Shown here piece after piece: positions 1 to 19,341 of a DNA stretch of 19,341 nt. Positions within the stretch are counted from its first letter, which is position 1; each line of letters starts with the position of its first letter. The position numbers and the translations under genes are program-made. This stretch comes from Macrostomum lignano (lineage: Eukaryota), in assembly GCA_002269645.1 (NCBI GenBank), contig NIVC01001594.1, positions 1 to 19,341 on the forward strand, written 5' to 3'. The notes beneath the pieces were generated by a model. The model worked only from the letters and a program-made list of their open reading frames with translations. It had not been told where the DNA came from and ran no database searches.

Positions 1-2592
1 TAGCTTTGAAGACACTCTGAAGCATTAATGATTGCGTAGCTTTGAAGACACTCTGAAGCATTAACTGATTGCGTAGCTTTGAAGACACTCTGAGCATTAA
101 TGATTGCGTAGCTTTGAAGACACTCTGAAGCATTAATGATTGCGTAGCTTTGAAGACACTCTGAAGCATTAATGATTGCGTAGCTTTGAAGACACTCTGA
201 AGCATTAATCATTGCGTAGGCTTTGAAGACACTCTGAAGCATTAATGATTGCGTAGCTTTGAAGACACTCTGAAGCATTAATGCATTGCGTAGCTTTGAA
301 GACACTCTGAAGCATTAATCATTGCGTAGCTTTGAAGACACTCTGAAGCATTAATGATTGCGTAGCTTTGAAGACACTCTGAAGCATTTGATTGCGTAGC
401 TTTGAAGACACTCTGAAGCATTAATGATTGCGTAGCTTTGAAGACACTCTGAAGCATTAATGATTGCGTAGCTTGAAGACACTCTGAAGCATTAATGATT
501 GCGTAGCTTTGAAGACACTCTGAAGCATTAATGATGCGTAGCTTTGAAGACACTCTGAAGCATTAATCATTGCGTAGCTTTGAAGACACTCTGAAGCATT
601 AATGATTGCGTAGCTTTGAAGACACTCTGAAGCAGCAATGCGTAGCTTTGAAGACATCTCTGAAGCATTAATGATTGCGTAGCTTTGAAGACACTCTGAA
701 GCATTAATGATTGCGTAGCTTTGAAGACACTCTGAAGCATTAATGATTGCGTAGCTTTGAAGACACTCTGAAGCATTAATGATTGCGTAGCTTTGAAGAC
801 ACTCTGAAGCATTAATGATTGCGTAGCTTTGAAGACACTCTGAAGCATTAATGGCGTAGCTTTGAAGACACTCTGAAGCATTAATCATTGCGTAGCTTTG
901 AAGACACTCTGAAGCATTAATGATTGCGTAGCTTTGAAGACACTCTGAAGCATTAATGATTGCGTAGCTTTGAAGACACTCTGAAGCATTAATGATTGCG
1001 TAGCTTTGAAGACACTCTGAAGCATTAATGATTGCGTAGCTTTGAAGACACTCTGAAGCATTAATCATTGCGTAGCTTTGAAGACACTCTGAAGCATTAA
1101 TGATTGCGTAGCTTTGAAGACACTCTGAAGCATTAATGATTGCGTAGCTTTGAAGACACTCTGAAGCATTAATGATTGCGTAGCTTTGAAGACACTCTGA
1201 AGCATTAATGATTGCGTAGCTTTGAAGACACTCTGAAGCATTAATGATTGCGTAGCTTTGAAGACACTCTGAAGCATTAATGATTGCGTAGCTTTGAAGA
1301 CACTCTGAAGCATTAATGATTGCGTAGCTTTGAAGACACTCTGAAGCATTGCTGATTGCGTAGCTTTGAAGACACTCTGAAGCATTAATGATTGCGTAGC
1401 TTTGAAGACACTCTGAAGCATTAATGATTGCGTAGCTTTGAAGACACTCTGAAGCATTAATGATTGCGTAGCTTTGAAGACACTCTGAAGCATTAATGAT
1501 TGCGTAGCTTTGAAGACACTCTGAAGCATTAATGATTGCGTAGCTTTGAAGACACTCTGAAGCATTAATCATTGCGTAGCTTTGAAGACACTCTGAAGCA
1601 TTAATGATTGCGTAGCTTTGAAGACACTCTGAAGCATTAATGATTGCGTAGCTTTGAAGACACTCTGAAGCATTAATGATTGCGTAGCTTTGAAGACACT
1701 CTGAAGCATTAATCATTGCGTAGCTTTGAAGACACTCTGAAGCATTGCTGATTGCGTAGCTTTGAAGACACTCTGAAGCATTAATCATTGCGTAGCTTTG
1801 AAGACACTCTGAAGCATTAATGATTGCGTAGCTTTGAAGACACTCTGAAGCATTAATGATTGCGTAGCTTTGAAGACACTCTGAAGCATTAATGATTGCG
1901 TAGCTTTGAAGACACTCTGAAGCATTAATGATTGCGTAGCTTTGAAGACACTCTGAAGCATTAATGATTGCGTAGCTTTGAAGACACTCTGAAGCATTAA
2001 TGATTGCGTAGCTTTGAAGACACTCTGAAGCATTAATGATTGCGTAGCTTTGAAGACAATCTGAAGCATTAATGATTGCGTAGCTTTGAAGACACTCTGA
2101 AGCATTGCTGATTGCGTAGCTTTGAAGACAATCTGAAGCATTAATGATTGCGTAGCTTTGAAGACAATCTGAAGCATTAATGATTGCGTAGCTTTGAAGA
2201 CACTCTGAAGCATTAATGATTGCGTAGCTTTGAAGACAATCTGAAGCATTGCTGATTGCGTAGCTTTGAAGACACTCTGAAGCATTAATGATTGCGTAGC
2301 TTTGAAGACACTCTGAAGCATTAATGATTGCGTAGCTTTGAAGACAATCTGAAGCATTAATGAAGCATTGAAGCATGATTGCGTAGCTTTGAAGACAATC
2401 TGAAGCATTAATGATTGCGTAGCTTTGAAGACACTCTGAAGCATTAATGATTGCGTAGCTTTGAAGACACTCTGAAGCATTAATGATTGCGTAGCTTTGA
2501 AGACAATCTGAAGCATTAATGATTGCGTAGCTTTGAAGACACTCTGAAGCATTGCTGATTGCGTAGCTTTGAAGACAATCTGAAGCATTGAT
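1..2592. repeat. Tandem array of a 36-bp unit (TAGCTTTGAAGACACTCTGAAGCATTAATGATTGCG), ~72 copies, truncated by the left window edge; lies in a presumed CFAP47 intron
   Basis: Unit read directly and repeated head-to-tail without spacers; produces the 12-aa periodic ORFs INASECLQSYAI and SLMLQSVFKATQ on the minus strand; unique sequence resumes at ~2593. Confidence 0.98.
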
Positions 2593-2724
2593 TCAAAGAC
2601 ACGTGCGATAGTCACGATGTGCTAGTTTTGCTATCACCGAAACTGCAAAACACTATTATCGATTAATAACACGATAAGACACTATTGAAATGAAAAATTA
2701 TTCATTAAAACCGCAAATCTCCAG

Positions 2725-3107
2725 ACTCGGCCTCACCCGATTCGCATCGAACTCAGCTGGAGGTCGCTCTCACCGGCACCGCCCTGCCAATCCTTCTGCA
2801 AGTCTCGCCCAAGCCGGAGGTGAACTTCGGCGCTGTCCAGCTGAACAACCCAGCCGACGCGGCTTTCACGCTGGCCAACCAATCCGAGGACGGCCTACCG
2901 GTGCTTTTCGCGTTCCGCAAGATCGCCCACTTCAATGCCAGACCAGAGCGAGGTCAAATTGAGCCAGGCCGCGAGCTGCCAGTCAGCGTCACCTTCTGCC
3001 CGAGGCAGTTTGGCAACTTCGACGTCCAATTGGAGATCTGCATACTCGGCGAGGTGGCCGATGATAGGCAAGATCCGCTAACGAGACGACTCGATGTTAT
3101 CCATTCG
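2725..3107 (+). CDS. CFAP47: CFAP47 internal exon A (ASH/Ig-like repeat)
   Basis: Acceptor ctccag|2725, donor 3107|gtgagc; phase 1 in, 0 out; ..QLEVALTGTALPILLQVSPKPEVNFGAV..FRKIAHFNARPERGQIEPG..VTFCPRQFG.. Confidence 0.88.
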
Positions 3108-3303
3108 GTGAGCTCACATAGTAGAACCGTGCAGAAACATTCTCCAAACTTCAGTTTGAATTGGCGTGAAAAATGAAAGCTACTACTATTAGCCGTGTTT
3201 TTTAGTAGACAAGGTAGCTCTTGGATTATCTGTCAACCTCTTGCGGCTGTCACCTCGACTTTAACCAAATCTCAACCTCGCTTGTCACTCCCGCCCGCCA
3301 CAG

Positions 3304-3620
3304 GTGTTCATGCGCCTCTCCGGCTCCTGTCGCGTGTTCGGCACTCAGCCAGCCGGTCGCTTCAACCCCGGCATCACCCCGCTGGTGGCCAACGAAGTCG
3401 GCCTGTGCACCGACACCCGATTCGACGAGCTAAACGAACGGCCGGTGCAGCCTCCGCTGGCGGCGCTGGTGGCCCACACGGATGCCCGGCTGCATCGGCA
3501 CGCCGTCTCGGCCGACGAGGGCAGCGGCGGCGACGGCAAGCGTCGGAAACAAGCGCGCATCGCCTTCCCGAATGATCGAGCCGCCAGCCTGCGACCGTCG
3601 GAGCGGCACGTGGACTATTG
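3304..3620 (+). CDS. CFAP47: CFAP47 internal exon B
   Basis: Acceptor ccacag|3304, donor 3620|gtgagg; phase 0 in, 2 out; VFMRLSGSC..RFNPGITP..RIAFPNDRAASLRP. Confidence 0.9.
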
Positions 3621-3771
3621 GTGAGGATTGGCGCTGGGTCGTTAAAGTTCCCCTTGGACTGTCTATCCGAAGTACAGTACGCCTCGTATATTCCCAGCAG
3701 TCTAAACTTCATAAACTAAACTTCAGTAGTAGATCAGTTGCACTTAACCATCCCTCCCATACCAACTTCAG

Positions 3772-4028
3772 CACCCTGTTCACCAGAGTGAAGCGACACA
3801 ACTTCGTAGACCCGGACTATGCCTACGAAGACTCCGAAGTAGAGCGCGTCCGTCAGCACAAGCAGGGCTACGCCGATAGCCAGAGAAAGCGAACGGAGAA
3901 TCTCATTGTGTCTCAGCGGGACCGGCGATTGAAGCGGTTCGAGAATGACAGAGATATGGGCATGATTCCCGCCATGGGGATGAGGCCTGTCAAGCTGGGG
4001 CTTGAAGACCTGCGGCCTGATACGCCTC
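3772..4028 (+). CDS. CFAP47: CFAP47 internal exon C
   Basis: Acceptor cttcag|3772, donor 4028|gtgagt; phase 2 in, 1 out; TLFTRVKRHNFVDPDYAY..DRDMGMIPAMGM. Confidence 0.9.
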
Positions 4029-4061
4029 GTGAGTTGGAGGGAAGCATTGAATGGCTATGGG

Positions 4062-5240
4062 ATTTGTTTAGGTCGGGATGAGATTCCATTTATTAGCTAT
4101 GAGACTCAGTTAGGTAGATATGAGCTTAACTTAGGTGAGTATGAGATTCGGTATGACATTCAGTCACGGACTACTTAAGTATTACTAGTGGTCCTTGCAT
4201 TCAGTTAGTTAGGTAAGGGATTCGGTTGGTAGGTATGAGATTCGGTTAGGTAGGTATGAGATTCGGTTAAAGAGATTCGGTTGAGTAGGTATGAGATTCG
4301 GTTAGGTAGGTCTGAGATGCGGTTGGGTAGGTATGAGATTCGGTTAAGTAGGTCTGAGATGCGGTTATAGGGGTGAGATTCGGTTGGGTAGGTATGAGAT
4401 TCGGTTAGGTAGGTCTGAGATGCGGTTATAGGGGTGAGATTCGGTTGGGTAGGTATGAGATTCGGTTGGGTAGGTATGATATTCGATTATTCGGTTAGGT
4501 AGGTATGAGATTCGGTTGGGTAGGTATGAGATTCGGTTGGGTAGGTATGAGATTCGGTTGGGTAGCTATGAGATTCGGTTGGGTAGGTCTGAGATTCGGT
4601 TGGGTAGGTATGAGATTCGGTTGGGTAGGTCTGAGATTCGGTTGGGTAGCTATGAGATTCGGTTGGGTAGGTATGAGATTCGGTTGGGTAGGTATGAGAT
4701 TCGGTTGGGTAGGTATGAGATTCGGTTGGGTAGGTATGAGATTCGGTTGGGTAGGTCTGAGATTCGGTTGGGTAGCTATGAGATTCGGTTGGGTAGGTCT
4801 GAGATTCGGTTGGGTAGGTATGAGATTCGGTTGGGTAGGTATGAGATTCGGTTGGGTAGGTATGAGATTCGGTTGGGTAGCTATGAGATTCGGTTGGGTA
4901 GGTATGAGATTCGGTTAGGTAGGTATGAGATTCGGTTGGGTAGGTATGAGATTCGGTTGGGTAGGTCTGAGATTCGGTTGGGTAGGTATGAGATTCGGTT
5001 GGGTAGGTCTGAGATTCGTTGGGTAGGTATGAGATTCGGTTGGGTAGGTATGAGATTCGGTTGGGTAGCTATGAGATTCGGTTGGGTAGGTATGAGATTC
5101 GGTTGGGTAGCTATGAGATTCGGTTGGGTAGCTATGAGATTCGGTTGGGTACCAGGGGTAGCTATGAGATTCGGTTGGGTAGGTATGAGATTCGGTTGGG
5201 TAGGTATGAGATTCGGTTGGGTAGGTATGAGATTCAGTTT
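4062..5240. repeat. Intronic 21-bp minisatellite (TATGAGATTCGGTTGGGTAGG); near-perfect core ~4505-5235 (~35 copies) with a degenerate left flank
   Basis: Unit read directly; gives the 7-aa periodic ORFs RYEIRLG and MRFGWVG; lies inside the 4029-5708 intron. Confidence 0.97.
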
Positions 5241-5708
5241 TAAAGCTATGAAAGTTCAGCTATGTGATTTTGTATCAAATTCAACGCATTTCAGCGAATG
5301 CCAAGTTCACATATTATCATCCAGTCAGGCCAGGTTAGAGGTTCATCTAGGCTTTTGTGGATTTTTTTATTTTTACTCAAATTTTATCCATCCCTCTGCG
5401 CATAACTTTTTCACGGAATATGTATCGGATTTCACCTAAACACAATGCTATTTGTTGTATTTGTCACCAGAAGGGACTCTTGAAAATGGTTTACAATGGT
5501 CAGGAAATGAGTAGTTTGTTTACCTTTAATCAATGTTGCACAATATCGTGGGTCAGCTTGTCAACAGAAAAGTTTTTTTAATTCCCGAAATTACCCTTAC
5601 TGACTTTAGCGCATGTTTCACCTGTTTTTTATTTTTTGCTGACCAGCTCATTAAAAGCAGAAAATAGCAAAGCAGTAACCTCCTGCTATTTAATTCGGTG
5701 TTTTGCAG

Positions 5709-7125
5709 CTCCTGAGCCGCCAAACAAAGTGTTCCAACTGCTCAGCACCAAGGAGATCCAGGATGTCAAGGAGACAGCGGCCAACCAGACGGCCAAGGAC
5801 GGCCTGGGCGCGGTGCCGATGAGCCAGAAGGAGAAGGAGGAGTGCCGCATGCTGCTGCGGCCGCAAGAGCTACACCAGGTTGTCATCACCCCGGCACCAT
5901 CGATTTCGGCGTCGTCTGCCTTCGTTCCGTGGTCACCCGCGAGCTGATAGTGATGAACAACCTTGAGACGAGCATCCACCTGGTGGTGGAGATTGACTGC
6001 CGCGAGCTGCGCCACTCCAGCCCGCTCAGCCAGGTGGTGCCGCCCAAGTCCAAGGCTCTGGTGCCGCTAATCTTTGAGTCCGCCCTCCAGGGCCGATTCC
6101 AACGAAACGTCAGCTATGTGATCAACGGTAACTATCGAAATCACGTGATCGCTCTGGCCGAAGTTGTGCCCGTACAGCTTGAGCTGAGCACCCAAGAGCT
6201 CGAGGTCGTGCCATGCGAAGGCCAACCAGCTGAGGCTGGAATCCGGGGCGTCATCACCCTGTACAACCGGCTGAACCACCCGGCCGAGTTCAGCTGGGAG
6301 CCGGTGCTGAAGGAGCGCCAGCACACCGCCTTCTCAATCAGGCCCCGAGCCGGCGTGGTCGAAGCTTTCAAAGACATCGACTGCGAGGTTGTCTTTCGGC
6401 CGTCGTTCAACGCGCCAGACGAAGGCTACTTCCGATTGCACGTCGAGGGCGGAAACGATTTGAATTTAAAGTGCGTGGCCAAGTTTGGCCCCACAAACGT
6501 ACAGTTCGTCAATCGTCGCGTGATGTTTGGCTCGGTGCCGCTCAACATGACCACGGTGAAGAAGGCTGTCCTGGTGAATAATTCTCAGAACCACGCGTAC
6601 TTTCACGTGATCAACAGCAAGCCCTGGCCTGGCATGGAGCTCGAGCCGCTAAGCGGCGTTGTCCCAGTCGGCGGACAGAAAGAGATTCGAATCTCGTTTA
6701 CTCCGTCGGCTGTGTCAAAGTTCGACTGCGGCACTCGGGTCGCCATCCGCGGCTGGCGCGACCTGGAGCTGCGCATGGGCGGCACAATCCTGTCGCCGTG
6801 CGTCGACATTCCGTTAAAAGAGTTCAACTTTGATGGCGTGTACGTTGGCGCGAGCAAGTCGATCAGCTTCGAGCTGGTCAATCAAACGCAGACAGACTCG
6901 CGACTCGAGTTCGATTTGAAACGGTATCCGGACTTCTCGCTCGACTTCGGCGGTCGGGCGAGCCCAGAGGACCTGGCTAATCCTGGAGTTCACACGGTGA
7001 CGCTCCGTCCTGAGGAGACTTTAAAAGCTGTGCTCACTTTCCGGCCCAAGGAAGTGGCGTCTTACAGCTTTCTGATGCCGGTGGTAATCAACAACACTCG
7101 AGCGCCGAGTCCTGCCGCTACTCCA
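5709..7125 (+). CDS. CFAP47: CFAP47 internal exon D (several ASH/Ig-like domains); contains an apparent 1-bp deletion at 5889-5892
   Basis: Acceptor ttgcag|5709, donor 7125|gtaagt. Reads QKEKEECRMLLRPQELHQVVITP in one frame and GTIDFGVVCLRS..FSIRPRAGVVEAFKDIDCEVVFRP..FNFDGVYVG in another; the exon is exactly one base short of what the flanking phases (1 in, 0 out) require. Confidence 0.9.
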
Positions 7126-7279
7126 GTAAGTTGCTAATTCGTACAAAGTTAAGTTTGTACTGCGAGCTTGTATATATTAAAACAGAATTTGTACGACCTT
7201 ACTATCCCGCTTAAGTTGTAGATAGTGTATCGTAGTTGGAAGATTCATTATAAAATACACCAAACCATGCAAACCGTAG

Positions 7280-8730
7280 GTGCCTCCGTCGCCAGCGCCC
7301 ACCGTGAAGGACGGCATCAGCATGTCTCGCATCGACTCGGCCACGAGTAGCAGCAGCGGTCGCGTCGGCTGGACGCCTCACGTGCCCGTGGTGCAGACGC
7401 CCCGCAAGCTGGTCAAAGGCATCGCCCTGCGTCCGGTGCTGCGCCTCTCGCGTCGCGAGTTCGCCTTCCAGCTGGCGCCTGAGGCGCTCCAGGATCAACT
7501 GGACGCGCAGGTGTCGCCGACGCCACCGCCGTTGAACCAGGCGACACCGGCGAATAACCGTCTGCAGCTGCTGACACTGGAGAACACGGGAGACTCAGCC
7601 ATCACATGGGCTGTAGACCTGCCAAACAGTCAGAAGGCCCTCCGAGACTCCTGCTTCAGCCTGACTCCAATCGAGGGTACCGAAGCTGCGCCCGAGGAGG
7701 CGAGCAGCGAATCTGGACGTCGCCTTTTCGGCCGTCTCGAGCCCGCAGCCACAGTCACCCTGACCGTGCAGTTCTCACCAAGGAGCCCAGGCCAATTTAA
7801 AGCCCGTCTACCTGTGGTTATCAACGACGACTGGCAGTTCCCCTACGATCACCTGACCCTGCGAGGCGAGCTCACCTGGCCTAGCATCACTTTCGTTCCG
7901 CCGGCACTCACCCTGACGCCGTGCCCGCTGCACTCGGCCATCTCCGTGCAGTTCTCAATACTGGCTGCCAACTACGCTGCGCCCAGTCGGCTAGAATTCA
8001 CCTTGCCGCAGGTCGAAGCCGACGACGGTTCACCGATCAAACCGCTCCGCCTAGAATACATCGACGGTCGCGGACCGGATATTTTCCCGGCCACAAAAGA
8101 TCCTGACGCGAACGGTGGCGGAAGTGACGCTTCGTTGGCGCAGCTGATCGAGCTCAGGTGCCGCCTGACGTTCGAGGCCAGCACGCCGGTATCGATCAGC
8201 AAGGAGATCCTCTTCCAGGACAGCTTTGGCAACCAGACCCGACTTCCCGTCTCCGCCACCGCCGATAACTGCCTTCTGACACTCTACCCGTTCGTTTTGA
8301 AGCATCGAGAAGACTATCACATCGTGACTGAGCAAGGAAAACTACTCGAAGGTCGTCGAGCTGCTCAACAATTGCCAGCAACTGAAACTGGCGAGCCGCA
8401 GATGGTCGCCTGTCGAGCCGAGGATCTGTCGGGCCTGGCAGCTGCATCGAGCAGGCCGAGCACCACAGCGACCAGCTCCAATTTTGAAGACTCGAGCACC
8501 TCCTACGAGGAGACCCTGACAGAGTCGGCTGCATCCAACACGCCACGCGACGGCGCGGTGAACAATCCCGCGTCGAGTAGCAAAGCCACTGGGCAGTCGG
8601 GTCCGCACGTTCCCGGCATGGTTGGCAAGACCGGCAAAACCCGTTGGCCGGATCATGCCCTAACGGAGAGCAGCTCCGATGGCCTAGTGGATGAGAACTA
8701 TCACCTGGAACGGGAAGGACTGTTTTATCG
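7280..8730 (+). CDS. CFAP47: CFAP47 internal exon E
   Basis: Acceptor ccgtag|7280, donor 8730|gtgagt; phase 0 in, 2 out; VKGIALRPVLRLS..VQFSPRSPGQFKARLPVVIN..SATADNCLLTLYPF. Confidence 0.9.
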
Positions 8731-9338
8731 GTGAGTCGCTATTTTCAAATGTTGCCAGGCATTTTCTGCCAACGCTGCAAGTTAAGAAGAGTTAGTTTTG
8801 GTTAGTACCCAGCTACGAGCTAGATTTTCTGTGATAGAGGTAGCAACTCTAAGCTGCTGTAGAAATACAAGGTGTGAGTGGCAGCTCTGACAGTGTCAGT
8901 ACTTTACAACAGTGCTCGAGTACCGACTGAAAACAAATTCTTTGAAGAAAAATGTTTATATTTGAATTAGAGCCAATCGGAAATTAGATAGACTATCAGG
9001 AGACAACCCTGTTTCGGCTAGAGATTGTCATTGTTAAAGTACGCTTTTAGTTTCTAGTCAAGAGCTACGGGTAAGTTTCTAGTAGAACATTAGAAGTTTT
9101 CAGTTTTAGAAACTAATGGTAATCTGCAGCGCCCCCTGTTGATGAGCCAACAAAGAATAGAATTTTTTTAATAAAATACATGTAGCCTCTGACCTCTCAG
9201 CCTTGACGTCTCGGCAATCGTAGAAAAATACTACAGTAGGCTTGGAATAAACGTTTCTGGTGCTTTCGGTCTTAGATACTAGTCAGGGAATCTGGTCGAA
9301 CCGACAAAATCAATTGATGCTCTTCCGCCAACCCGCAG

Positions 9339-10005
9339 CGACATGCTGAGCATAGTCCAGCGCTGGTTCACCAACTACGGCTGGCCAGGCGGCCAGTTCC
9401 CCGTCACGGTGCCGAACAGCATGCGCAGCGGCCTGTCGCGGAAGCAGCAATCCGACGAGCAAGACGACAGTAGCAATCGAAAGAAGAAATCAACTACGTC
9501 GAACGACAAAGACGGTAACAAAGACGGAAACAACGCCGGTGGCAAAGGTGCCGCCCTTGACTCCGGCGGCGGTAAAAGCGAAGTGAAGACTATCTACGAC
9601 ATGATTACACACCTGTGCGGCAGGCCGGCCCCGGGCATCCCAATTAGCGCTGCTTTGCCCAGCCAGGCAGCCGAGCGGGTGAAGCAGATCTACTGGCAGC
9701 ACGCCACTCTGCTGACCTTCCTGCGCAGTCAGGGTGGCTGCTTGGCCTCAGTCCGGCCAGAGCATCTCATGGAGCCCAAGGACTACCGCTGTTGGAAGTC
9801 ACTTCAGGCTAAGAAGCCAAATTCTGCTGCAGAAGCTTCCGGCTCACCTGAGTCCATCGAAGATGACGGATTGGAGCCTTCGCCGGGTCGTCTGGTACGC
9901 GACGTTGAAGAGGCTGGACGCGATGAAGAGCTGTTCGAATGCGTTTCTAAACGGGCCTGGACAGATGTCCTGCTGCAGATACTCAAGACGCTGGTGTTGT
10001 ACAAG
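9339..10005 (+). CDS. CFAP47: CFAP47 internal exon F
   Basis: Acceptor ccgcag|9339, donor 10005|gtgagg; phase 2 in, 0 out; QRWFTNYGWPGG..GGCLASVRPEHLM..SKRAWTDVLLQILKTLVLYK. Confidence 0.92.
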
Positions 10006-10236
10006 GTGAGGATGGATATGCTTGGATCAAGGTACCTAAGTCGAATGAGAAAGTAAAAGCATTTACACGAGTAACTGTATGTAGCAGAGCTCACATATAA
10101 ATACCTTTGGTTACGTAGGTCAAAGGCGGAAAATTTTGAGTCAGATAGAAATGGATTTGATCAGTTAGGTCAATCAGTAAATATATTGGATCAGGTAGAT
10201 CAAACAAAGGAATTTTTTCTATTCTTTCTTCCCCAG

Positions 10237-10414
10237 GTGACACCGCGCAGCTTCAAGAACCTTCGCCAGCCGGACCCTCACATGCCGCTACCGAGCATCA
10301 GCCTGTCGCCATTGGCATCGAATGTGTACACGGTCAACGAGCGGATCTTGCTAGCCTGGCTGAACCATTTCTACGACAACTACAGGACAAAGATCTGGAC
10401 TGACGGAGACAAGG
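10237..10414 (+). CDS. CFAP47: CFAP47 internal exon G (start of the calponin-homology domain)
   Basis: Strong pyrimidine tract then ccccag|10237, donor 10414|gtgagc; phase 0 in, 1 out; SNVYTVNERILLAWLNHFY is a CH-domain helix A-type motif. Confidence 0.92.
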
Positions 10415-10656
10415 GTGAGCTTGAAAATCGAAAAGCCTCAAAATATCGCATCTTTCAGAATATTGGAATTATAAAAGAAATTTCACTCCGATGGCATTTT
10501 TCTAAGAGCTTTTTAAATCTTGTCAATCAATATTCATAAAACCGGTCTCTAGTGAGCTTCAAACGATTTTCTGATTTAGCGTCCTCCTTAAGCATTTGAA
10601 CACTGCAAACAATGAATTTGATCCCTACCAACACCTACCAACAATTCTTACTTCAG

Positions 10657-11811
10657 GCGGGGTACCACCCGCTCGATGGGTAATCAACTTCGACCACGAC
10701 CTCCTCGATGGCCTGGTCCTGGCTGCTGTGATTGGCGCCCACTGCCCCTACCTGATTGACAGTCATCTGCGCGGCATGTACACCGCCCCAAGCACTCCTG
10801 AGCAGTGCCTGCACAACTCTCTCCGAGTGGTCAACGCTATGCGTTTTGTTGGACTGGACTTCGACGTTCAAGCGCTTGACTTGACCGCTCCGAATCCGGT
10901 TCTGCTGATGCTGCTGTGCGTGTACCTGTACCAGACCCTGCCGCAGTACATCATCAAATCCAACGTTGACTTCTCCGGCGGCCTGCATCAGACCTGTTCG
11001 CGTCAGGTGACCTTGGTGAACCCGGTGGCGAAAACGCCGGCCTACCGGGCAGCCCTGGCCGGCCGGGACGCCGCCGACTTCTCCCTGCCGAAAGGCGACC
11101 TCGTCTCGCTGCCTCCCAAAGGCCGGGTGCCCGTCAGCGTGGAGTTTCGCTCCCGATTCCTTCGGCCAGCCGAGGCCGTCCTGCTGCTCATCGGCCGACC
11201 GTCCGGGCCGCATCAGGGTTCTACCCAGGTGTTTCGCTTGGTAACCCAGGTGAATTCTATTCAACCAATCAGCACGGTTCAGGTGGCATCTCATTGCTAC
11301 GAGTTGAAGCCGGTCAGACTAAATGTCGTCAATCCGTTCAACTGCGAAGCCGTATTCGCGGTGTCACTTGTCGAAGGCGGCACCGACCAGCTGCTGCTAA
11401 ATGCGTGCGAAAAGCGTCAACAACAGCAGCAACAGCAACAGCAGCAGGAGAGGCAAATCGAAAGGAAAAAGTCCAAGCAAGGTCCACCGCCGCCGCGCAG
11501 CGTGGACACCAAAGGCGCCCAGAGCCGCCCCGAGCCGCCAGTTTCTATGAAATCGTTCTTCTGTCACGTGCCAGAAATTCGACTGGCGCCGCGCGGCAGC
11601 GCCGAGATCGACATGAACTTCCTGCCGTTCCAGGTGGACAAGAAGCAGTGCTCAGTGGTGCTGCGCAACCCCACCGTTGGCGAGTTCGTCTACGGAGTCG
11701 AGGCGGTGGCGGACCTGCCCGTGCCGACAAGAATTCCAATGGAGGAGGCCAACGCAACGCCGGGTGCGCCGCCGACAAAGACCGTTCGAATCAGCAGCGC
11801 TGTTGCAGCTA
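10657..11811 (+). CDS. CFAP47: CFAP47 internal exon H (CH domain plus following Ig-like domains)
   Basis: Acceptor cttcag|10657, donor 11811|gtgagt; phase 1 in, 1 out; RWVINFDHDLLDGLVLAAVIGAHCPYL..PNPVLLMLLCVYLYQTLPQY..FLPFQVDKKQCSVVLRNPTVGEFVY. Confidence 0.93.
11418..11447 (+). repeat. CAA/CAG trinucleotide repeat encoding Q10 in CFAP47 exon H
   Basis: caa caa cag cag caa cag caa cag cag cag, in the CFAP47 frame. Confidence 0.95.
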
Positions 11812-11952
11812 GTGAGTCTTTGTTTTCTGTTTCTCATAGTGGCACTATTGATAGTATAAAGCAGACAAAAATTTACAATATTGTCCGGTAATTTTTCTGA
11901 TAGGAATGATTGACACATACTCCTCTGTAGTACATTTTGTAGTACAGTTATC

Positions 11953-12124
11953 ATTGTGTTTTAATTTATTTGAATCTCCTTAAGTTTGTACGTTCACTGG
12001 TTGCTACTTTTAGTAGGGACTATTGTGTTTTAATTTATTTGAATCTCCTTAAGTTTGTACGTTCACTGGTAGCTACTTTTAGCTACTTTTAGTTCACTGG
12101 TTGCTACTTTTAGTAGGGACTATT
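11953..12124. repeat. Intronic 69-bp tandem duplication (two copies plus a partial third)
   Basis: ATTGTGTTTTAATTTATTTGAATCTCCTTAAGTTTGTACGTTCACTGGT at 11953 and 12022; TTCACTGGTTGCTACTTTTAGTAGGGACTATT recurs at ~12093-12124. Confidence 0.93.
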
Positions 12125-12282
12125 TCAGTTTATCAAATCACACAGTGAGTTAACAGGAATTATGATGGTAACTTTAATTTACGCATTTGTCAGTTTTCGG
12201 CTTCCTTACTCGCTGGATCAAACCTGCCTACCTCAAAAACAGTTAATTAGAGGTTTACCTTCCCGCAAACGCATTCTCGCAG

Positions 12283-12566
12283 GCCGCGGTCAGAGCAGCG
12301 TTGTACACGATCACTCCATCGTGTACTGGCGCACCGAAGCCAACAAGGAGGTCAAGGAGGTGCTAAAAATTCCTCTAATTAACGAATACAAAGAGAAAGC
12401 ACTGCTCCAGGCGGCACAGCAGCATCTCAGCCTCAAGGAGGTGCAACGGCGTCGAGTGACGGGCACGCTTGAGTCTGGAACCCTCGTGGAGAAGGCCATG
12501 GAAATGCTGAGCGCTGTTGGCGTTGATGGCAAGAAACTGGAGAAGACTAACAGCTCGATTGAAAGG
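12283..12566 (+). CDS. CFAP47: CFAP47 internal exon I
   Basis: Acceptor tcgcag|12283, donor 12566|gtattt; phase 1 in, 0 out; LKIPLINEYKEKALLQAAQQHLSLKEVQRRRVTGTLES. Confidence 0.88.
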
Positions 12567-12661
12567 GTATTTAGCAGTTCTTTTTCAGTATCTTAATACT
12601 GCTTTGTTACTCAAAATCTACTTTCGATGCATCTAAAATTAGCTTTTTTATTTATTTACAG

Positions 12662-12785
12662 CGCAAGTTCCAGTTCAGCAAGGAGACAATCGACTTTCAA
12701 GTGGAGCTGGACTCTCATCACTTCCGTGCTCCATCCGTGATCAGCATTCCGCATCCTAGGAGCACTGATAATTCGTTGAAGAAAG
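12662..12785 (+). CDS. CFAP47: CFAP47 internal exon J (short, absent from the ORF track)
   Basis: Acceptor tttacag|12662, donor 12785|gtaaat; 124 bp, phase 0 in, 1 out, exactly bridging exons I and K; RKFQFSKETIDFQVELDSHHFRAPSVISIPHPRSTDNSLKK. Confidence 0.82.
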
Positions 12786-12905
12786 GTAAATCTATTTATT
12801 GATCTATTTTACTGCCGGTGAATGCATAGCTGAATGCATGATCTTGAGTGGTATTTGATCGTCGAATGAGCCGATTTAGGGCAGTCTTGGTCCGGATAAG
12901 AATTA

Positions 12906-15609
12906 GGGTCGTTCTCAAAGTTTAGTCGTAAGCAGTGAAACAGATCATAAGCAGTGATATCTTTGAAATCAACCTGAACTTTGATGTTATAGCTCGATAA
13001 TCGCACGAAAATACCCTCAGAGACTACATCTTTCACGTGGTTTTGATGTTAATCTCATCAGAGTGCGCTATTTCATTTTTCGATAATAACGCACGAGTTA
13101 TAATACCCACTTTAGAGAAGCTACATTCGTTCACGTGGTCTTATTAAAGAAGAATTGATAAATGTCAATAACTTTGTTAGCACAACCTAGAACCCATTTA
13201 ACTCTTTGGATTGCAAAGCAGAGATTGCTACGATTTTTGCTAGAAACGTAACATTATGAATGATAAAAAAATCCACTTTTAATTAATTTGTTCTGTTGAT
13301 AGAATACGCTAATAGCTGCGTTTTCTGCTGTTTTTTAAGAAAGATAGTCATATCTAACACTAAAGTATCAATTAAGGCAGTTTCATTCTATATTAAGAAA
13401 GAAAAGTTAAATAAATTCAATTTTAAGTTTTTTTCAATAGCACAAAATTAACCTAACAAAGAGAGATTTCGCTGACTACAACAAAGCAAGTAGCACCAAA
13501 GTTATTTTAATTTAAAGTCCTCATCTGTGGGATGAGAAAAAGTACCACTTTTTTGTCTCTAGTTATGAAAAAAAAATTTCTCAGCACATTGTTAGGTTTT
13601 TTGGATGTTTTTTTATGTACGCTCGTAATTTAGATGAATTTTTGCTATTGATCACCCAATATGTTAGTCAGAACAAACAGAATTTGATTTATGTAGATAA
13701 AATTGACTTTTTTTCTCTTAAAAACAGTCGTTTTTTGTTGTTTTCACACAATTTTTTCAACTGATTTAAAATTTGTATTGTAAGTTACAAGTAAACATAA
13801 TGAGTCAAAACAAGAGTAGAAGAAAGTAGTAGAAAGTAGTAGTAGAAGAAAGAGAGTAGTAGAAACTGAAAAGAAAATAAGAGTAACGAATAATAAAAAA
13901 GTTGCATGATTTGATTAGTCAAGAAATAGTATTAAAAAAATTTTGTATCTGATTTATTATCAATGAAATTAGCTGTCTGAAGCACAAAAAATTAATTTCT
14001 TTGAAACATTAAATTCATTCTCATATGTTCTGCAATTCATTAAAGATATACATGTAGCAACTTAAACATTCAGTTGATACTTTCCACCTTTGGATGCATA
14101 TAGCTACTAACAAGAAAAAAGACAAAAGAAAAAACTTAATTGCCATTGATGCTGGCAATGTAATATTAAATATGGTACAGAAAGATGGAATCTCTACAGA
14201 GTGCTGCCACACGAATTTTTGAAGTGTTTAACAGATAAGTCATGGCAGTACCATAACAGACATACTATATTTTATATTACTCTTCGATTGACAATTACGC
14301 TTTAGATATGTTTTAGATGATGATTTTCCATTGGGACTGACTCTATATACCGAGGCCAGACACAGTTAAGTGCGGCTGACAGCACTGAAGCGGCGGTTAA
14401 CAGAGAATGCGATGAGCTGTGGCCTGTGGAGACAGCCAGCTGATGTACGAGCATCAGTAGAAGGGAAAGACATCCAATAGTGTCTTGCTATTGGTTTGTT
14501 ACATGTACAGCGAACATCTACTTTTATTCTAATGTGATCGATTTAATTCTACTGACCCAATTGGCTAAAGCACTGTAAACTGCACACCTCTCGGACGGAT
14601 ATGTAATGCCATTTGCTGCACTTTTACCTGTTTCTCTGCCAGAACACCAGCATCATTGTATGTGCCACAATGCTAAGATGTGCAGTGGTCCTTTGGGTGT
14701 GGTTAGTTCTGCAGGCATCGACGTAATTTATCAAATGAGACGAATTGTATACCGAGCATTACAGCTAGTGCAGGGCCAGAATCGATTACAGAGGTTCGCC
14801 AGAGCAATTGCAGTGATCCATGTGGCTGCCGAGTCAGACGTCTGTAATAGGCTAATTAACTTACCAAGACCAAAGTATTTAATTTAAATTTATAAGCTGT
14901 TCTTTTAGTAGTTATGCAGCCTAATTACATAAGAAAATAGTATAGTAAAATAGTAAAATAGTATTAAAGCTATGTTGCAGAATATAAATGCTTGCTGAAG
15001 TATTTTTTTTTAAAAACGCAAGTCTGTTCGAAAAAAGATACATGCATTTTAGGTTTTAAAAGAAATGGCTTCCTAGCTCGTTTACTATATATATTCTAAT
15101 TCAAAAAAACTTTTAATGCTTTAAAAGACATATTTTGCAAGCCTAATTTTTAGCTAAACCAGTTTTGTATATTTTAAGCTTCATATTTCGGTGTTTAAGT
15201 ACAATAATTAAGTTCTTGAGTGGTACAATATCAATTAATTCGGGTGTTTCTTGTTACGCGATAATTTTAAATACAAGCAATTTATACGAAAAAAACAAAA
15301 TGTTGATTTAAAAATAACATTTTCTATTGAAATAATACTTATTAAATAGTAAACATAGAATAAAAGATGTATCTAATTCATAAAAAAATAAAAGAAAACT
15401 TGCATTATTTCACAATTTTTGGTCGTTTTATTTTCCGTTGCGAAAAATAACAAATTGCTAGATTTCGTCTTAAATATTTGGTTTCTTGTGGTTTTAACGG
15501 CAGTTTTTTAATTAAATTGACGAAAGAATCGTTTTTGCAAAATAATTACTTTATTCAAAAACTTTTTTTTCTGTACCAAAACATCATGACCTTAATTTGA
15601 GAACTACCC
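12906..15609. mobile_element. Probable non-autonomous or decayed cut-and-paste DNA transposon, 2704 bp; superfamily not established (termini fit Sola2-type GRG..CYC with a 4-bp TSD)
   Basis: GGGTCGTTCTCAAA (12906-12919) is a 13/14 inverted match to TTTGAGAACTACCC (15596-15609); ATTA flanks both ends (12902-12905, 15610-15613); removing it leaves a ~230-bp intron like its neighbours. No transposase ORF recognised. Confidence 0.62.
13814..13865. repeat. Purine-rich low-complexity tract (AGT/AGAA mosaic)
   Basis: gagtagaagaaagtagtagaaagtagtagtagaagaaagagagtagtagaaa. Confidence 0.75.
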
Positions 15610-15720
15610 ATTATAAGAACACCCATACAGATCATTCAAGCTTGGCTTGTACTTCACTCTTCTGATAACTACGAACATTTGTTTATAAAACTCGATAATC
15701 CGTCCCTGAAATTCCCTCAG

Positions 15721-16350
15721 ACCCGACTGTCACAACTTTCGACCTGCCGTTGGAGTTTCGTCCGAAGCGACCGGGCGTCTACCCGGTGACGATTATCTTG
15801 AAAGCCAACGACGATGTCAGGCTATTCCGCGTCGAATGCATCGTCATTCCGGAGGGCTTCTCGGCCGAGCTGCAATTCGAAAGTCCCGTCAATCAAGCCG
15901 TCCTGCAGAACATTCCCGTGATCAACCAGACTAAGGACGATTGGCGGCTGAAAGCGGAGATGCACGGCGTCAACTTCCACGGGCCGGACTACCTGCTGGC
16001 CAAGGCGTACAAAACCACCAGCTATCCGTTGACGTTTAAGCCGACGCACGAAGGCGAAGCCACCGGTCGGCTGCTGCTAACTAATTTGGACGACGGCACT
16101 GAGCACTGCTACGTCCTTGGCGGCATCGGTCGCAAGCCGCTAGCGTTGGACCATCTGGTGTTCGACTGCCAGGTTGGAGAGTCAATCACCCGAGTGGTGC
16201 TGGTGCCAAACAATTCCAAGCGGAAGCTGCTCTATCAGGTGGAGAGCAATCTGTCATTTGTTGGCGGCAAGAAAGAAGTGACGGTACTGCCGGGAAGGCA
16301 GGTTGAGTACACAATCGTCATTGCGCCGAACAAGAGAGGCAAATTTGATG
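15721..16350 (+). CDS. CFAP47: CFAP47 internal exon K
   Basis: Acceptor cctcag|15721, donor 16350|gtaagt; phase 1 in, 1 out; DLPLEFRPKRPGVYP..QNIPVINQTKDDW..YPLTFKP..GIGRKPLALDH. Confidence 0.92.
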
Positions 16351-16397
16351 GTAAGTATGGTATATTTTTACCGTATCTATCAAAAGTGGAATAAATA

Positions 16398-16403
16398 TTT
16401 ATT
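16398..16403 (-). promoter_or_regulatory. Candidate AATAAA polyadenylation signal of the nested TRPV-like gene
   Basis: TTTATT on + at 16398-16403, ~245 bp downstream of the TAG at 16650-16648; positional fit only, in AT-rich sequence. Confidence 0.35.
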
Positions 16404-16647
16404 GCTGACACAGATGAAAAAATATTGGAGGTAACTAATTTTGTATACTAGTAAAAGACTATAATTGGAAAAATAAGACACTATAATAGAATGAATTCTA
16501 CCAAAACTTATAGTGCGTCAATGGTAAAAAATAAGAATTTCAGAAGGTTTCTATCCGTGATGTTATAAGTACAGTTTATCCGTCTACAACTATTCTTGAC
16601 TGCAAAATTACAAAAAATGAAAAGTTAAAAGAAAATCTACTGAACAC

Positions 16648-18521
16648 CTACAGAACCTCTTTGATGACTTTCATAGACTTGCTGTTTAGGTGCAACGGCA
16701 TGCACAGATAAATAACCAGACGAGATTCGCGACCTCGCAACCGATTCACTAGCTGGTAGAGCCAGAAGTAGCTGGTCTCGGCGTACTCGCAGAAGTTCAA
16801 CTTCAACAGGTACTTGGCTTCTACGTCGTTGTCCATGGTTTCGCTGACCACCGATGACAGCAGGCCGGTGACGAAGTTGATGAACAGAGTGGGCACGAGA
16901 AGAACGAAGAAGAAATGTGTCACCAGCAGGTCGACTCGATCCGGCTGTGGTAGGAAAAGCCCGGTGTCCAAGACGTTCAGCGTCAGCAGAAACGACTGGT
17001 AGAATGATTCGGCGAAGCTGAACCGTCTCGCGCCGGCCTGGGTACCGCCGCTGCAGTTACCTGAAGTCGAGTCGGTTGGCCATACGAAACGGCCAGAAGC
17101 TTGGAATAGTCGGGCAAAAATGCTTAATAGTAGTATGTAGCAGAGAAGGAAATTGGCGAACATTGAAAAGCTCTTATAGAAACTATTGATAAACTTGGAC
17201 ATGACCATTGCTAGGCGACTTAAGACCAGAACAGACAGAATGCTAGCCAAGACGTAAAAGAGCATGATGCAGCCCATGAAGCTGCGTAGTCTATCAGCTC
17301 CGATAGACTTGCATACCGCTTCCGGACTGATACCCAAAAAGATAATTACAATAGCCAAGATTGCGGATGTTACATAGGGAACCTGCCAGCGCAGTGCGCT
17401 ATTCAGGCCTGTCCGAAAAAAGGACGGGTAGTTATTTGATTGCCGGTACTTCAATTTTCGTCTCTCGCCCAGCACACTAATGACAGCCTGCCAGGTGCTT
17501 GCAAACAAACTGTAGCCAACGATCACCAGAAATCCTGTCGGTAATCGCTGTCCATTGCTATTGTTGCACCTCTCAACCATGTAGTCGCCAACCTCGTAGT
17601 CAAAAAAGATAAGCGTCAGGCTGCAGTGCAGAATCCTTTCAACGAAGTACACAACTAGGAGCCAGGTGTTGCGCCGGAACAGCGCATCAATCCATGGGGC
17701 GATTAGCAAAGGTCGGCGGAAAATACCGATGGTTTTGAGATTCGCTAGGTTGGTCTCTCCGTACAGATCGTTCATGATGGACAGCGCAGTGAGGCTTCTC
17801 GTCGGCGAGGTGCTAACAGAGAATGACAGGTCCACCTGAACATGCTCCATCACTCCGGCGACTTTGGCCTTACTGTCCAGAGTATGCGACAGGTACATTA
17901 ATTTCTCAACCACAAGAACTTTGCCGCGGAATACGCCCCAATCCAGCGGTCGCATGCCAATGCAGTTCATAGCATGAGACATTCGATCCACCTGGTCTGA
18001 CGTAAACAACTCGGCCAGAAAGAAGCGCATGTAATCCATCTCGTTGTTAAGAAGCTCCAGTGCGTCGACCGGCCAGAGGACGTCTAGTCCAAGGAAGAGG
18101 ACGTGATAGCCATTAAAATCGAACTCGGCGATTTCGGCAAGGTCCAAATCTGAAGCGAATGCTTAATCAGCTGGCAGCAGCGCCTTGCGTTAAACATGAT
18201 GGCCATCAGAAATACGTTGGTTGGGTACGGGTGAGTTCTCGGTACGACGAAGTTGCCAAACTGAGTGCGCCGATATTCTTGGCCGCAGTGACGCATCTTG
18301 CTTGTTGTGTCCCAGCTCTTCAGGAACTTGCGCCATGCATCAACTCCCAGCCGATCAGCGAAGCCGCGCAGAGCTGTATCGTCATCTGATAGCAGACACT
18401 TGATAAGAAGCGGCCACTGCCTCTCATTTACGAAGTTACTGATGTCGTTGTGAGCGTTCTCAGGCTTGGGCGTCCAGCTGCCAGTAGCTGAAGCTGGTCC
18501 TACCTGAAAGAAGTGCTTCAT
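16648..18521 (-). CDS. Divergent TRPV-like cation channel (ankyrin-like repeats plus 6-TM and pore), nested antisense in the CFAP47 intron 16351-19016; one frameshift near 18163; ~624 aa if repaired
   Basis: Joins ORFs 18084..18578 and 16648..18147. Features: ankyrin-like NCIGMRPLDWGVFRGKVLVVEKLM and DFNGYHVLFL; pre-S1 PWIDALFRRNTW; a run of hydrophobic helices; pore helix/filter FAESFYQSFLLTLNVLD; S6 FFFVLLVPTLFINFVTGLLSSVVSE resembling TRPV LLMLNLLIAMM. First ATG at 18521 (aaaATG); the true start is uncertain because a phase-0 acceptor (ctttcag|18503) is also present. Confidence 0.78.
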
Positions 18522-19016
18522 TTTCAAGCAATGGTGGGCCTGATTCTGTTCAGTCAGTTCTACCGGCAGATATCCCAATAAACTTAACCTTGCCTTCTAT
18601 GAGCTTTATTTGATTCCATTAGCTAGTTATTTGCTCATCAAGTTTATCCTTATTCAAACAGAGCGCTGCTACTTGCTAAGTTAACAAGATTATGAGCGAG
18701 AATTAATCCATGTAAATCTGCATATTGGTTGGTTACTTTATTTGAATTGTTAGCATTCAGCTATTCCAATGTAAAATATTGCTCCAGAGTGATCAACGAC
18801 AAACGACATTTTCGCTTTGGCACACTGAACAATGAGTTTAATGCAAGAGTAAATAGACTAGACATGTTGCCATGACTTTGCCAAAATGAAGCTCATTCAT
18901 TCCGCTCTTATTTTTACTGTCATTTTACTCTCAGCTCGGGACGTTTACATTTAGCAACCACTGGCATGTGATAAAACCTTCACTATCGCTAAAAACACTG
19001 TACCACTTGTCACCAG

Positions 19017-19341
19017 GCGTAATTGCTTTCGTAGCCGACAAGGACCGCCTAGTCGACTACGACTCCGATGGCGAAGAGCTGCCACCAGTCGACGACAATC
19101 CTAGCACTGAGCACCGAGTTTGGTACAGCATGGAGCTCAGCGTGGCTCCGGGAGAGCCAATGGGCCGTCTCAACGTCACATGCCCGTGCTATCGAACCTG
19201 CGAAGTGGAATTCACGTCAGGAATCCCCTGACCGACAAGGAGATCGAGTTGGACGCAGAAATTCGCGGCGAGTCCCTCAGCGGCGAAAAAGTGCTGCGTT
19301 TGGCGCGGCCGCAGGTGAGAGGCGTCGACACAGGGACTACT
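19017..19341 (+). CDS. CFAP47: CFAP47 internal exon L; apparent 1-bp deletion at 19209-19210; 3' end uncertain (possible donor at 19315, or runs off the window)
   Basis: Acceptor caccag|19017, phase 1; GVIAFV..RVWYSMELSVAPGEP..CEVE then, after a frame change, VRNPLTDKEIELDAEIRGESLSGEKVLRL. A candidate donor cag|gtgaga sits at 19314/19315. Confidence 0.8.

Follow-up and report, generated by a model that had tools for sequence, protein, structure and literature searches.

Does an intron of the cilium gene CFAP47 in the flatworm Macrostomum lignano contain an independent gene, and if so, what kind of protein does it encode? The question is raised by contig NIVC01001594.1 (assembly GCA_002269645.1), of which we analyzed positions 1 to 19,341 of the forward strand; this whole stretch of 19,341 nucleotides is called the window below, and all coordinates refer to it. 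A preliminary description of this DNA had proposed a nearly complete gene for a TRPV-like channel with ankyrin repeats and six transmembrane (TM) segments at 16648-18521, lying antisense in a CFAP47 intron, interrupted by one frameshift and possibly coupled to its host in ciliated cells. Our analysis indicates that the locus probably holds an independent, single-exon protein-coding gene for a channel of the TRPV/TRPVL type, nested antisense in that intron.

A minus-strand coding region nested in CFAP47

Two open reading frames (ORFs) occupy the minus strand at the locus, at 18578..18084 (164 aa) and 18147..16648 (499 aa), and three-frame translation showed that they form one gene with a single frame change. 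The coding region opens with the upstream ORF's first ATG, at 18521 (MKHFFQ...), a position that the preliminary description had also given as the boundary of the gene, extends to the stop codon at 16648-16650, and comprises about 622 codons (1,874 bp) in a single exon. Its N-terminal segment (18156..18521, minus strand, 122 codons in frame A by translation) spans MKHFFQ...HPYPTNVFLMAIMFNARRCCQLIKHS, of which HPYPTNVFLMAIMFNARRCCQLIKHS is the equivalent of the fourth TRPV ankyrin repeat (ANK4), and ends in ...NARRCCQLIKHS. Frame B takes over with (D)LDLAEIAEFDFNGYH and reads (D)LDLAEIAEFDFNGYHVLF... to the stop at 16648. Translation, alignment, and an AlphaFold2 (AF2) model place in this C-terminal segment (16648..18147, minus strand, 499 codons plus stop) the ANK5-6 equivalents, a beta-hairpin linker, the pre-S1 region, S1-S6, an equivalent of the TRP helix, and a C-terminal beta-strand.

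Homologues from M. lignano are collinear across the frame junction (NAQKCLIYMNESGVDFSSIVEHGLNAYHHLF) and locate the switch within 8 nt, at 18148..18155 on the minus strand, where 6 or 9 nt would be expected. The break corresponds to a 1-nt loss or a 2-nt gain and lies beside a TTT/AAA run, and the single frameshift of the preliminary description is borne out. An intron in place of the frameshift was ruled out, because residues that are neighbors in the homologues lie only 8 nt apart here and such a gap is too short. Shuffled sequences (2000) gave longest open stretches of 119 codons on average and never more than 345, compared with 504 codons in the actual sequence, and the GC content at third codon positions (GC3) is 0.62-0.64 in both frame segments (0.62 in the N-terminal one), against a GC content of 0.27 and 0.38 in the flanking intron DNA. 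The N-terminal segment also matched the N-termini of both M. lignano paralogues in tblastn (E 1e-11 to 1e-12), and the best homologue, P0002, likewise begins with MKH. An AATAAA hexamer 245 nt 3′ of the stop (16398..16403, minus strand), within the intron, is a candidate poly(A) signal as judged from sequence only. Rfam and tRNA scans of the window gave no matches, and a sigma-70 promoter and terminator scan was set aside as not applicable to a eukaryote.

The host was identified as CFAP47 by a match to PF24529 above the cut-off (E 3e-19), by further domains in other exons (CFAP65-type, ASH Ig-like, and CH), and by 49% identity to a CFAP47-like protein from Xenia. Exon K (15721..16350, plus strand; start approximate, after CCCTCAG at 15720) encodes an Ig-like ASH/Cep192-type domain according to the domain scan and ends at 16350 in GATG/GTAAGT, and exon L (19017..19314, plus strand) starts after ACCAG/, ends in CAG/GTGAGA, and has an apparent 1-nt frame break near 19207. 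The intron between them (16351..19016, plus strand, 2,666 bp, GTAAGT...CAG) has AT-rich flanks and splits a Gly codon (G/GC), which keeps the host frame across 16351-19016. The nested coding region lies wholly within this one intron on the opposite strand, with the host splice sites and frame intact, and fills 70% of it. The proposed position between exons K and L thus agrees with the splice sites, the frame, and PF24529, and a nearly complete gene with ankyrin repeats and six TM segments at 16648-18521 agrees with the ORFs, hydropathy, and family alignment.

Homology to TRPV channels

We searched 1.84 billion (1.84e9) representative proteins exhaustively with phmmer (E <= 1e-3) and recovered only 19 relatives of the window protein. 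The top relatives are three M. lignano proteins with 28-34% identity (E 2.5e-65 to 2e-28), namely PAA64149.1/A0A267ETJ5 (P0002), A0A1I8HKA1, and A0A1I8HLH7, annotated merely as "hypothetical protein" or "Ion_trans domain-containing protein", and the others come from ENA, Logan, and NCBI assemblies. The family is present in databases, yet uncharacterized. Its full-length members that we aligned measure about 580-660 aa and are collinear with the window protein.

A profile of 13 family members (A1) was compared with the PDB, and its top 60 matches were all TRPV channels: TRPV3 ranked first (E 2.6e-22), followed by TRPV5, TRPV2, TRPV6, and TRPV4, with E-values down to 1e-14. The alignment with TRPV3 starts at about its residue 260 (ANK4), takes in S1-S6 and the TRP helix, and ends at the C-terminal strand. 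A narrower profile (A2), from which the three most TRPV-like, bridging members had been removed, matched designed ankyrin-repeat proteins (E 9e-8, at the GLRPxELAV...AERLL repeat) and S3-S6 of TRPV5 (E 5e-5). One bridging member, P0015, matched the window protein with an E-value of 2e-6, and when P0015 alone was compared with the PDB, all 51 of its 51 matches at E <= 0.01 were TRPV channels, including TRPV5 (6e-12) as well as Nanchung and Inactive (E 1e-6). Among domain models, TIGR00870 ("trp") matched four family members with at most 50 bits against a cut-off of 498.75 bits and did not match the window protein, and the Pfam models Ion_trans and Ank_2 were found in one relative (E 1.5e-6) and in two, respectively.

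The AF2 model built from the family alignment reached a predicted local distance difference test score (pLDDT) of 77.6 and a predicted template modeling score (pTM) of 0.76, and contains six TM helices and a pore helix. Its beta-strands at residues 92-97 and 100-106, which form a hairpin, and at 478-484 near the C-terminus correspond in the sequence alignment to TRPV3 YGPVSSSLYDL and FRLCLRINE. In TRPV structures, the hairpin and the C-terminal strand form a characteristic linker sheet. The top 50 Foldseek matches in the PDB were all TRPV1-6 or Nanchung/Inactive, with query-normalized TM-scores of 0.50-0.61 over 450-530 columns. A model predicted from the single sequence reached a pLDDT of 39 and was unusable. 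Profile, bridge-sequence, and fold comparisons together support TRPV channels as the closest characterized relatives of the window protein, which is homologous to them and shares their fold.

Domain architecture and TRP fingerprint

Hydropathy of the 499-aa ORF revealed six TM segments, at residues 163-181, 207-225, 256-274, 291-309, 327-345, and 412-430, and a 65-residue loop between S5 and S6 that corresponds to the pore; the helices of the AF2 model agree with these positions. The S1-S6 domain defined by hydropathy, AF2, and the TRPV3 alignment comprises residues 163-430 (16858..17661, minus strand). S4 (MGCIMLFYVLASILSVLVL), as read from its sequence, has basic residues at its ends only and no arginine ladder. 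The pore helix and selectivity filter, placed by the family/TRPV3 alignment, occupy residues 377-396 (SFAESFYQSFLLTLNVLDTG; 16960..17019, minus strand). The filter reads LNVLD: F386 corresponds to F638 of TRPV1, D394 to D646, and N391 replaces the filter Gly. The acidic residue D394, at the position of the acidic filter residue of TRPV channels (TRPV1 D646, TRPV6 D541), aligns with the filter Asp of TRPV3 and is conserved in 12 of the 13 family members, and the filter Asn is invariant. Across the pore and S6, F386, D394, F414, and N424 are conserved at TRPV positions.

In the ankyrin domain, only the equivalents of ANK4-6 could be aligned, and the roughly 95 residues upstream leave room for one or two further repeats at most; a six-repeat ankyrin domain of the TRPV kind was not found. 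The best-kept repeat, equivalent to TRPV ANK6 by profile A2 and the TRPV3 alignment, lies at residues 62-95 of the 499-aa ORF (CIGMRPLDWGVFRGKVLVVEKLMY; 17863..17964, minus strand), where A2 matched designed ankyrin-repeat proteins with E-values of 1e-7 to 1e-3. A TRP helix is present at residues 441-459 of the AF2 model, with K445 at the position of the TRP-box Trp followed by Y446, and none of the family members has Trp there.

The TRP fingerprint consists of 12 residues (W F Y G F F Y N L I A W), at least nine of which are retained by 95% of TRP channels; canonical TRPV channels score 12/12, and TRPVL and TRPS score 7/12 (PMC9242649). We read these 12 positions of Cabezas-Bratesco et al. 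(PMC9242649) by adding a TRPV3 fragment to the family alignment. In rat TRPV1 numbering, the window protein keeps W426 (W152), Y441 (Y167), F591 (F344), F638 (F386), Y666 (as F414), and N676 (N424), and has lost F434 (N160), G563 of the S4-S5 linker (S317), L678 (V426), I679 (T427), A680 (G428), and W697 (K445). Its score of 6/12 falls below the nine residues expected of the TRP superfamily. The TRPV-like character that the preliminary description had assigned to the protein accordingly stands on profile, bridge, and fold, whereas the protein is not a canonical TRPV, having 6 of 12 fingerprint residues, about three ankyrin repeats, and no TRP-box Trp.

Position among known TRPV and TRPVL channels

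Vertebrate TRPV channels (TRPV3, 5/6, 2, 4, and 1), which gave the best profile and fold matches, share with the window protein the ANK4-6 repeats, beta-hairpin linker, pre-S1 Trp, S1-S6, pore-helix Phe, pore Asp, S6 Asn, position of the TRP helix, and C-terminal strand. They differ in having six ankyrin repeats where the window protein has about three to four, a fingerprint of 12/12 against 6/12, a filter of G(M/L)GD or TIID against LNVLD, a TRP box of IWxLQR against K445/Y446, and multi-exon genes, and their identity to the window protein is 11-17%. Nanchung and Inactive of Drosophila are also among the top fold matches (query-normalized TM-scores 0.52-0.58) and, as described above, are matched by P0015, but they are far larger (chains of 882-984 residues) and no closer than the vertebrate channels.

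TRPVL, which occurs in cnidarians, annelids, and molluscs, is the sister family of TRPV and has the fingerprint consensus W - N G F F W N F I A A (PMC9242649), and TRPVL from flatworms is not reported in PMC5196486, PMC9242649, or PMC12980990. Compared with this published consensus only, the window protein shares an Asn near pre-S1 and the absence of the TRP-box Trp, and P0015 alone has the S6 motif N-x-F-I-A; by contrast, S6 of the window protein reads N-F-V-T-G, and Ser stands at the G563 position. The evidence supports a very divergent channel of the TRPV/TRPVL group rather than a canonical TRPV, and the window protein may be a member of TRPVL or of an unnamed sister clade. It is also conceivable, as a tentative proposal that we consider doubtful, that the family constitutes a TRPV-related subfamily not yet described, separate from TRPV as well as TRPVL, with about 600 aa, three to four ankyrin repeats, an invariant LN..D filter, no TRP-box Trp, mostly intron-less genes, and a distribution over few poorly sampled invertebrate lineages; the lack of introns would then suggest that an ancestral TRPV/TRPVL mRNA was retroposed and that its descendants diverged fast and duplicated locally.

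Among the family members, single-exon genes include the window gene, P0019, P0006, and an M. lignano copy upstream of P0002, a pattern that fits spread by duplication or retroposition. P0002 and this second, uncalled copy form a tandem pair between Arv1 and UGGT. The M. lignano paralogues resemble the window gene in length (623 aa), architecture, and collinearity from MKH... to the C-terminal CxP strand, and differ from it in their tandem position outside CFAP47; P0002 further differs by about 100 bp of intron sequence and by N instead of D at the acidic position of the filter. The upstream paralogue matched the window protein in one gapped tblastn high-scoring segment pair of 531 residues and in an in-frame N-terminal match.

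Two observations on gene models in this family may be added. The upstream paralogue is uninterrupted (positions 6080-7918 of locus L001, M. lignano NIVC01001778.1), lies 2 kb upstream of the annotated P0002, and is not among the called genes. Word-indexed searches with the ORF and with the 13-sequence profile gave P0001 as their sole match (UniRef A0A1I8H738, M. lignano, 732 aa), a chimeric gene model of two consecutive channel copies; copy 1 lacks S2-S5, and copy 2 lacks the stretch from after S2 to the pore helix and stops inside the pore helix.

Intactness of the gene and alternative explanations

Several observations weigh against an intact TRPV/TRPVL-type channel gene. The hidden Markov model search for Ion_trans and Ank that had been suggested as a check gave no Pfam match for the window protein alone, nor did the protein match any NCBIfam model, and phmmer of the 499-aa ORF against the PDB returned no channel, its sole matches being spurious ones to histone H2B with E-values of at least 0.02. 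The training data of AF2 contained TRPV structures, and the alignment supplied to it included the more TRPV-like members. As read from the alignment, the filter Gly, the S4-S5 Gly, the S6 L-I-A, and the TRP-box Trp are all replaced, and channel function is not guaranteed because half of the TRP fingerprint is replaced. Finally, the frameshift is present in the assembled sequence.

The frameshift raises the question of whether the gene is a recently inactivated pseudogene, that is, a duplicated or retroposed family copy in the CFAP47 intron, disabled by a real 1-nt frameshift that separates the ANK4 equivalent from the ANK5 equivalent. Besides the lesion itself, the single exon set apart from the M. 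lignano tandem arrangement would fit such an origin, as would substitutions at a neighboring pair of near-invariant residues (SP to TA) and at I679. However, the lesion is the only one in 1.87 kb, in-frame stops are absent, and codon bias is kept. Deviations from conserved family columns are not above those of intact relatives: 12 of 53 columns in the window protein, compared with 11 and 13 in the M. lignano relatives, and 3 of 23, compared with 3 and 4. The flanks show neither a poly(A) tract nor a credible target-site duplication as footprints of retroposition; the only flanking direct repeat (D2) has 17 nt with 82% identity and a 9-nt exact seed, within chance expectation for 3 kb. Moreover, the conserved exons of the host carry at least two similar 1-nt breaks, near 5888 and 19207. 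At the former (5880-5892, plus strand), in a CCCCGG run, the alignment with orthologues (P0026 and P0022) is contiguous (residues 421 to 428 of the query and 5887 to 5890 of the window), yet frame 1 takes over from frame 2, and this break is probably an assembly indel; at the latter (19200-19212, plus strand), exon L reads ...RTCEVEFT and then continues as HVRNPLTDKEIELD... in another frame to the donor at 19314/19315 (CAG/GTGAGA). Because the host exons break alike and no excess of decay is seen in the nested gene, its frame break is probably an assembly indel as well. We therefore regard the gene as likely intact and a recent pseudogene as unlikely. The three breaks in roughly 10 kb of coding sequence within one window could also all be real if the whole locus were a decaying duplicate, with CFAP47 and the nested gene both pseudogenized in a duplicated or polyploid genome, and M. 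lignano does have near-identical duplicates on different contigs (P0002 and P0021). Yet all the breaks are single-nucleotide changes, the one near 5888 in a short homopolymer run with the usual signature of assembly error, and premature stops are absent, GC3 is strong in every exon, and the splice sites are intact. Three such breaks fit assembly indels better than three independent lesions, and we consider decay of the whole locus quite improbable.

Taking the gene as likely intact, one may still ask whether it encodes a channel of another kind, such as TRPA, TRPC, TRPN, or a non-TRP channel, with a superficial resemblance to TRPV. The low fingerprint score could be read in this way, and the S6 Gly at the position of TRPV1 A680 together with the lack of a TRP-box Trp recalls TRPA1, which has both (PMC9242649). 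Nevertheless, no non-TRPV channel appeared in the top 60 profile matches, the 51 matches of P0015, or the top 50 fold matches, and the TRPV3 alignment spans the full length, with the TRPV-specific linker hairpin (YGP...YDL) and C-terminal strand (LCxxxxE) among the aligned elements; we consider this explanation extremely unlikely. As for the position of the gene, the preliminary description had suggested that channel and host are linked, either in a shared chromatin domain of ciliated cells or by mutually exclusive expression through transcriptional interference. Invertebrate TRPVs such as OSM-9/OCR-2 and Nanchung/Inactive act in sensory cilia, CFAP47 is a protein of the cilium or flagellum, and convergent antisense transcription in one intron makes interference physically possible. 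However, CFAP47 belongs to motile axonemes, whereas the sensory cilia of these TRPVs are non-motile. In addition, a tblastn search with all host exons detected no CFAP47 exons at the P0002, P0019, and P0006 loci (L001-L003). Because the loci checked lack them, association with CFAP47 does not characterize the family as a whole. In animal genomes it is common for genes to lie antisense within introns, usually without functional coupling, and the nesting itself is ordinary. A link between the two genes is improbable in our estimation; the simplest account of their arrangement is that a gene duplication or insertion happened to place one inside the other, and no regulatory meaning should be read into nesting alone.

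Proposed structure and function of the channel

For a TRPV/TRPVL-type gene, the product would be a subunit of a highly divergent, non-voltage-gated cation channel. From the N-terminus, the predicted order is a shortened ankyrin domain (the ANK4-6 equivalents, with perhaps one repeat more upstream), the beta-hairpin linker, pre-S1, S1-S4 without a voltage-sensing arginine ladder, S5, the pore helix, S6 (with the filter LNVLD before it and Asn424 within it), a TRP-helix equivalent without Trp, and the C-terminal beta-strand. By analogy with solved TRPV structures, four subunits would assemble into a tetramer in which a ring of Asp394 side chains, aligned with the pore aspartate of TRPV1/5/6, lines the outer pore. 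Such a channel would be expected to conduct cations, probably including Ca2+, and Asn424 of S6 may provide the hinge for gating. The three to four ankyrin repeats, together with the linker sheet, would form a cytosolic skirt. The gene may be transcribed independently of CFAP47, from a promoter of its own within the roughly 500 bp upstream of it.

Free-living flatworms retain TRPVs that were lost in parasitic ones (PMC5196486), and surveys of lophotrochozoans contain unclassified TRPV/TRPVL-like genes (PMC12980990). The classification of TRP channels in lophotrochozoans is still unsettled. A TRPV fold kept with half of the supposedly near-universal fingerprint replaced offers a natural test of which residues are needed for gating and permeation. 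The locus also illustrates how nested, divergent, single-exon genes can escape annotation when domain scans of a single protein miss the gene and an indel splits its frame.

Other features of the window

Further repeats and low-complexity stretches were observed along the window. Positions 1-2589 consist of a 36-bp minisatellite (TAGCTTTGAAGACACTCTGAAGCATTAATGATTGCG) in about 66 copies with 96% identity, followed by variant blocks, and contain long spurious minus-strand ORFs. A 21-bp minisatellite (GAGATTCGGTTGGGTAGGTAT) in about 45 copies, also with spurious ORFs, lies between CFAP47 exons at 4199-5251 and has a strong G-over-C skew (up to 0.64) and a T-over-A skew. Within the CFAP47 exon at 10596-11891, positions 11400-11460 (plus strand) encode a run of 10 glutamines (EKRQQQQQQQQQQERQ) and then a basic low-complexity stretch. 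Between CFAP47 exons at 12600-15720, 3.1 kb of very AT-rich DNA (GC 0.29-0.38) contains an isolated plus-strand ORF of 93 aa (14606-14887).

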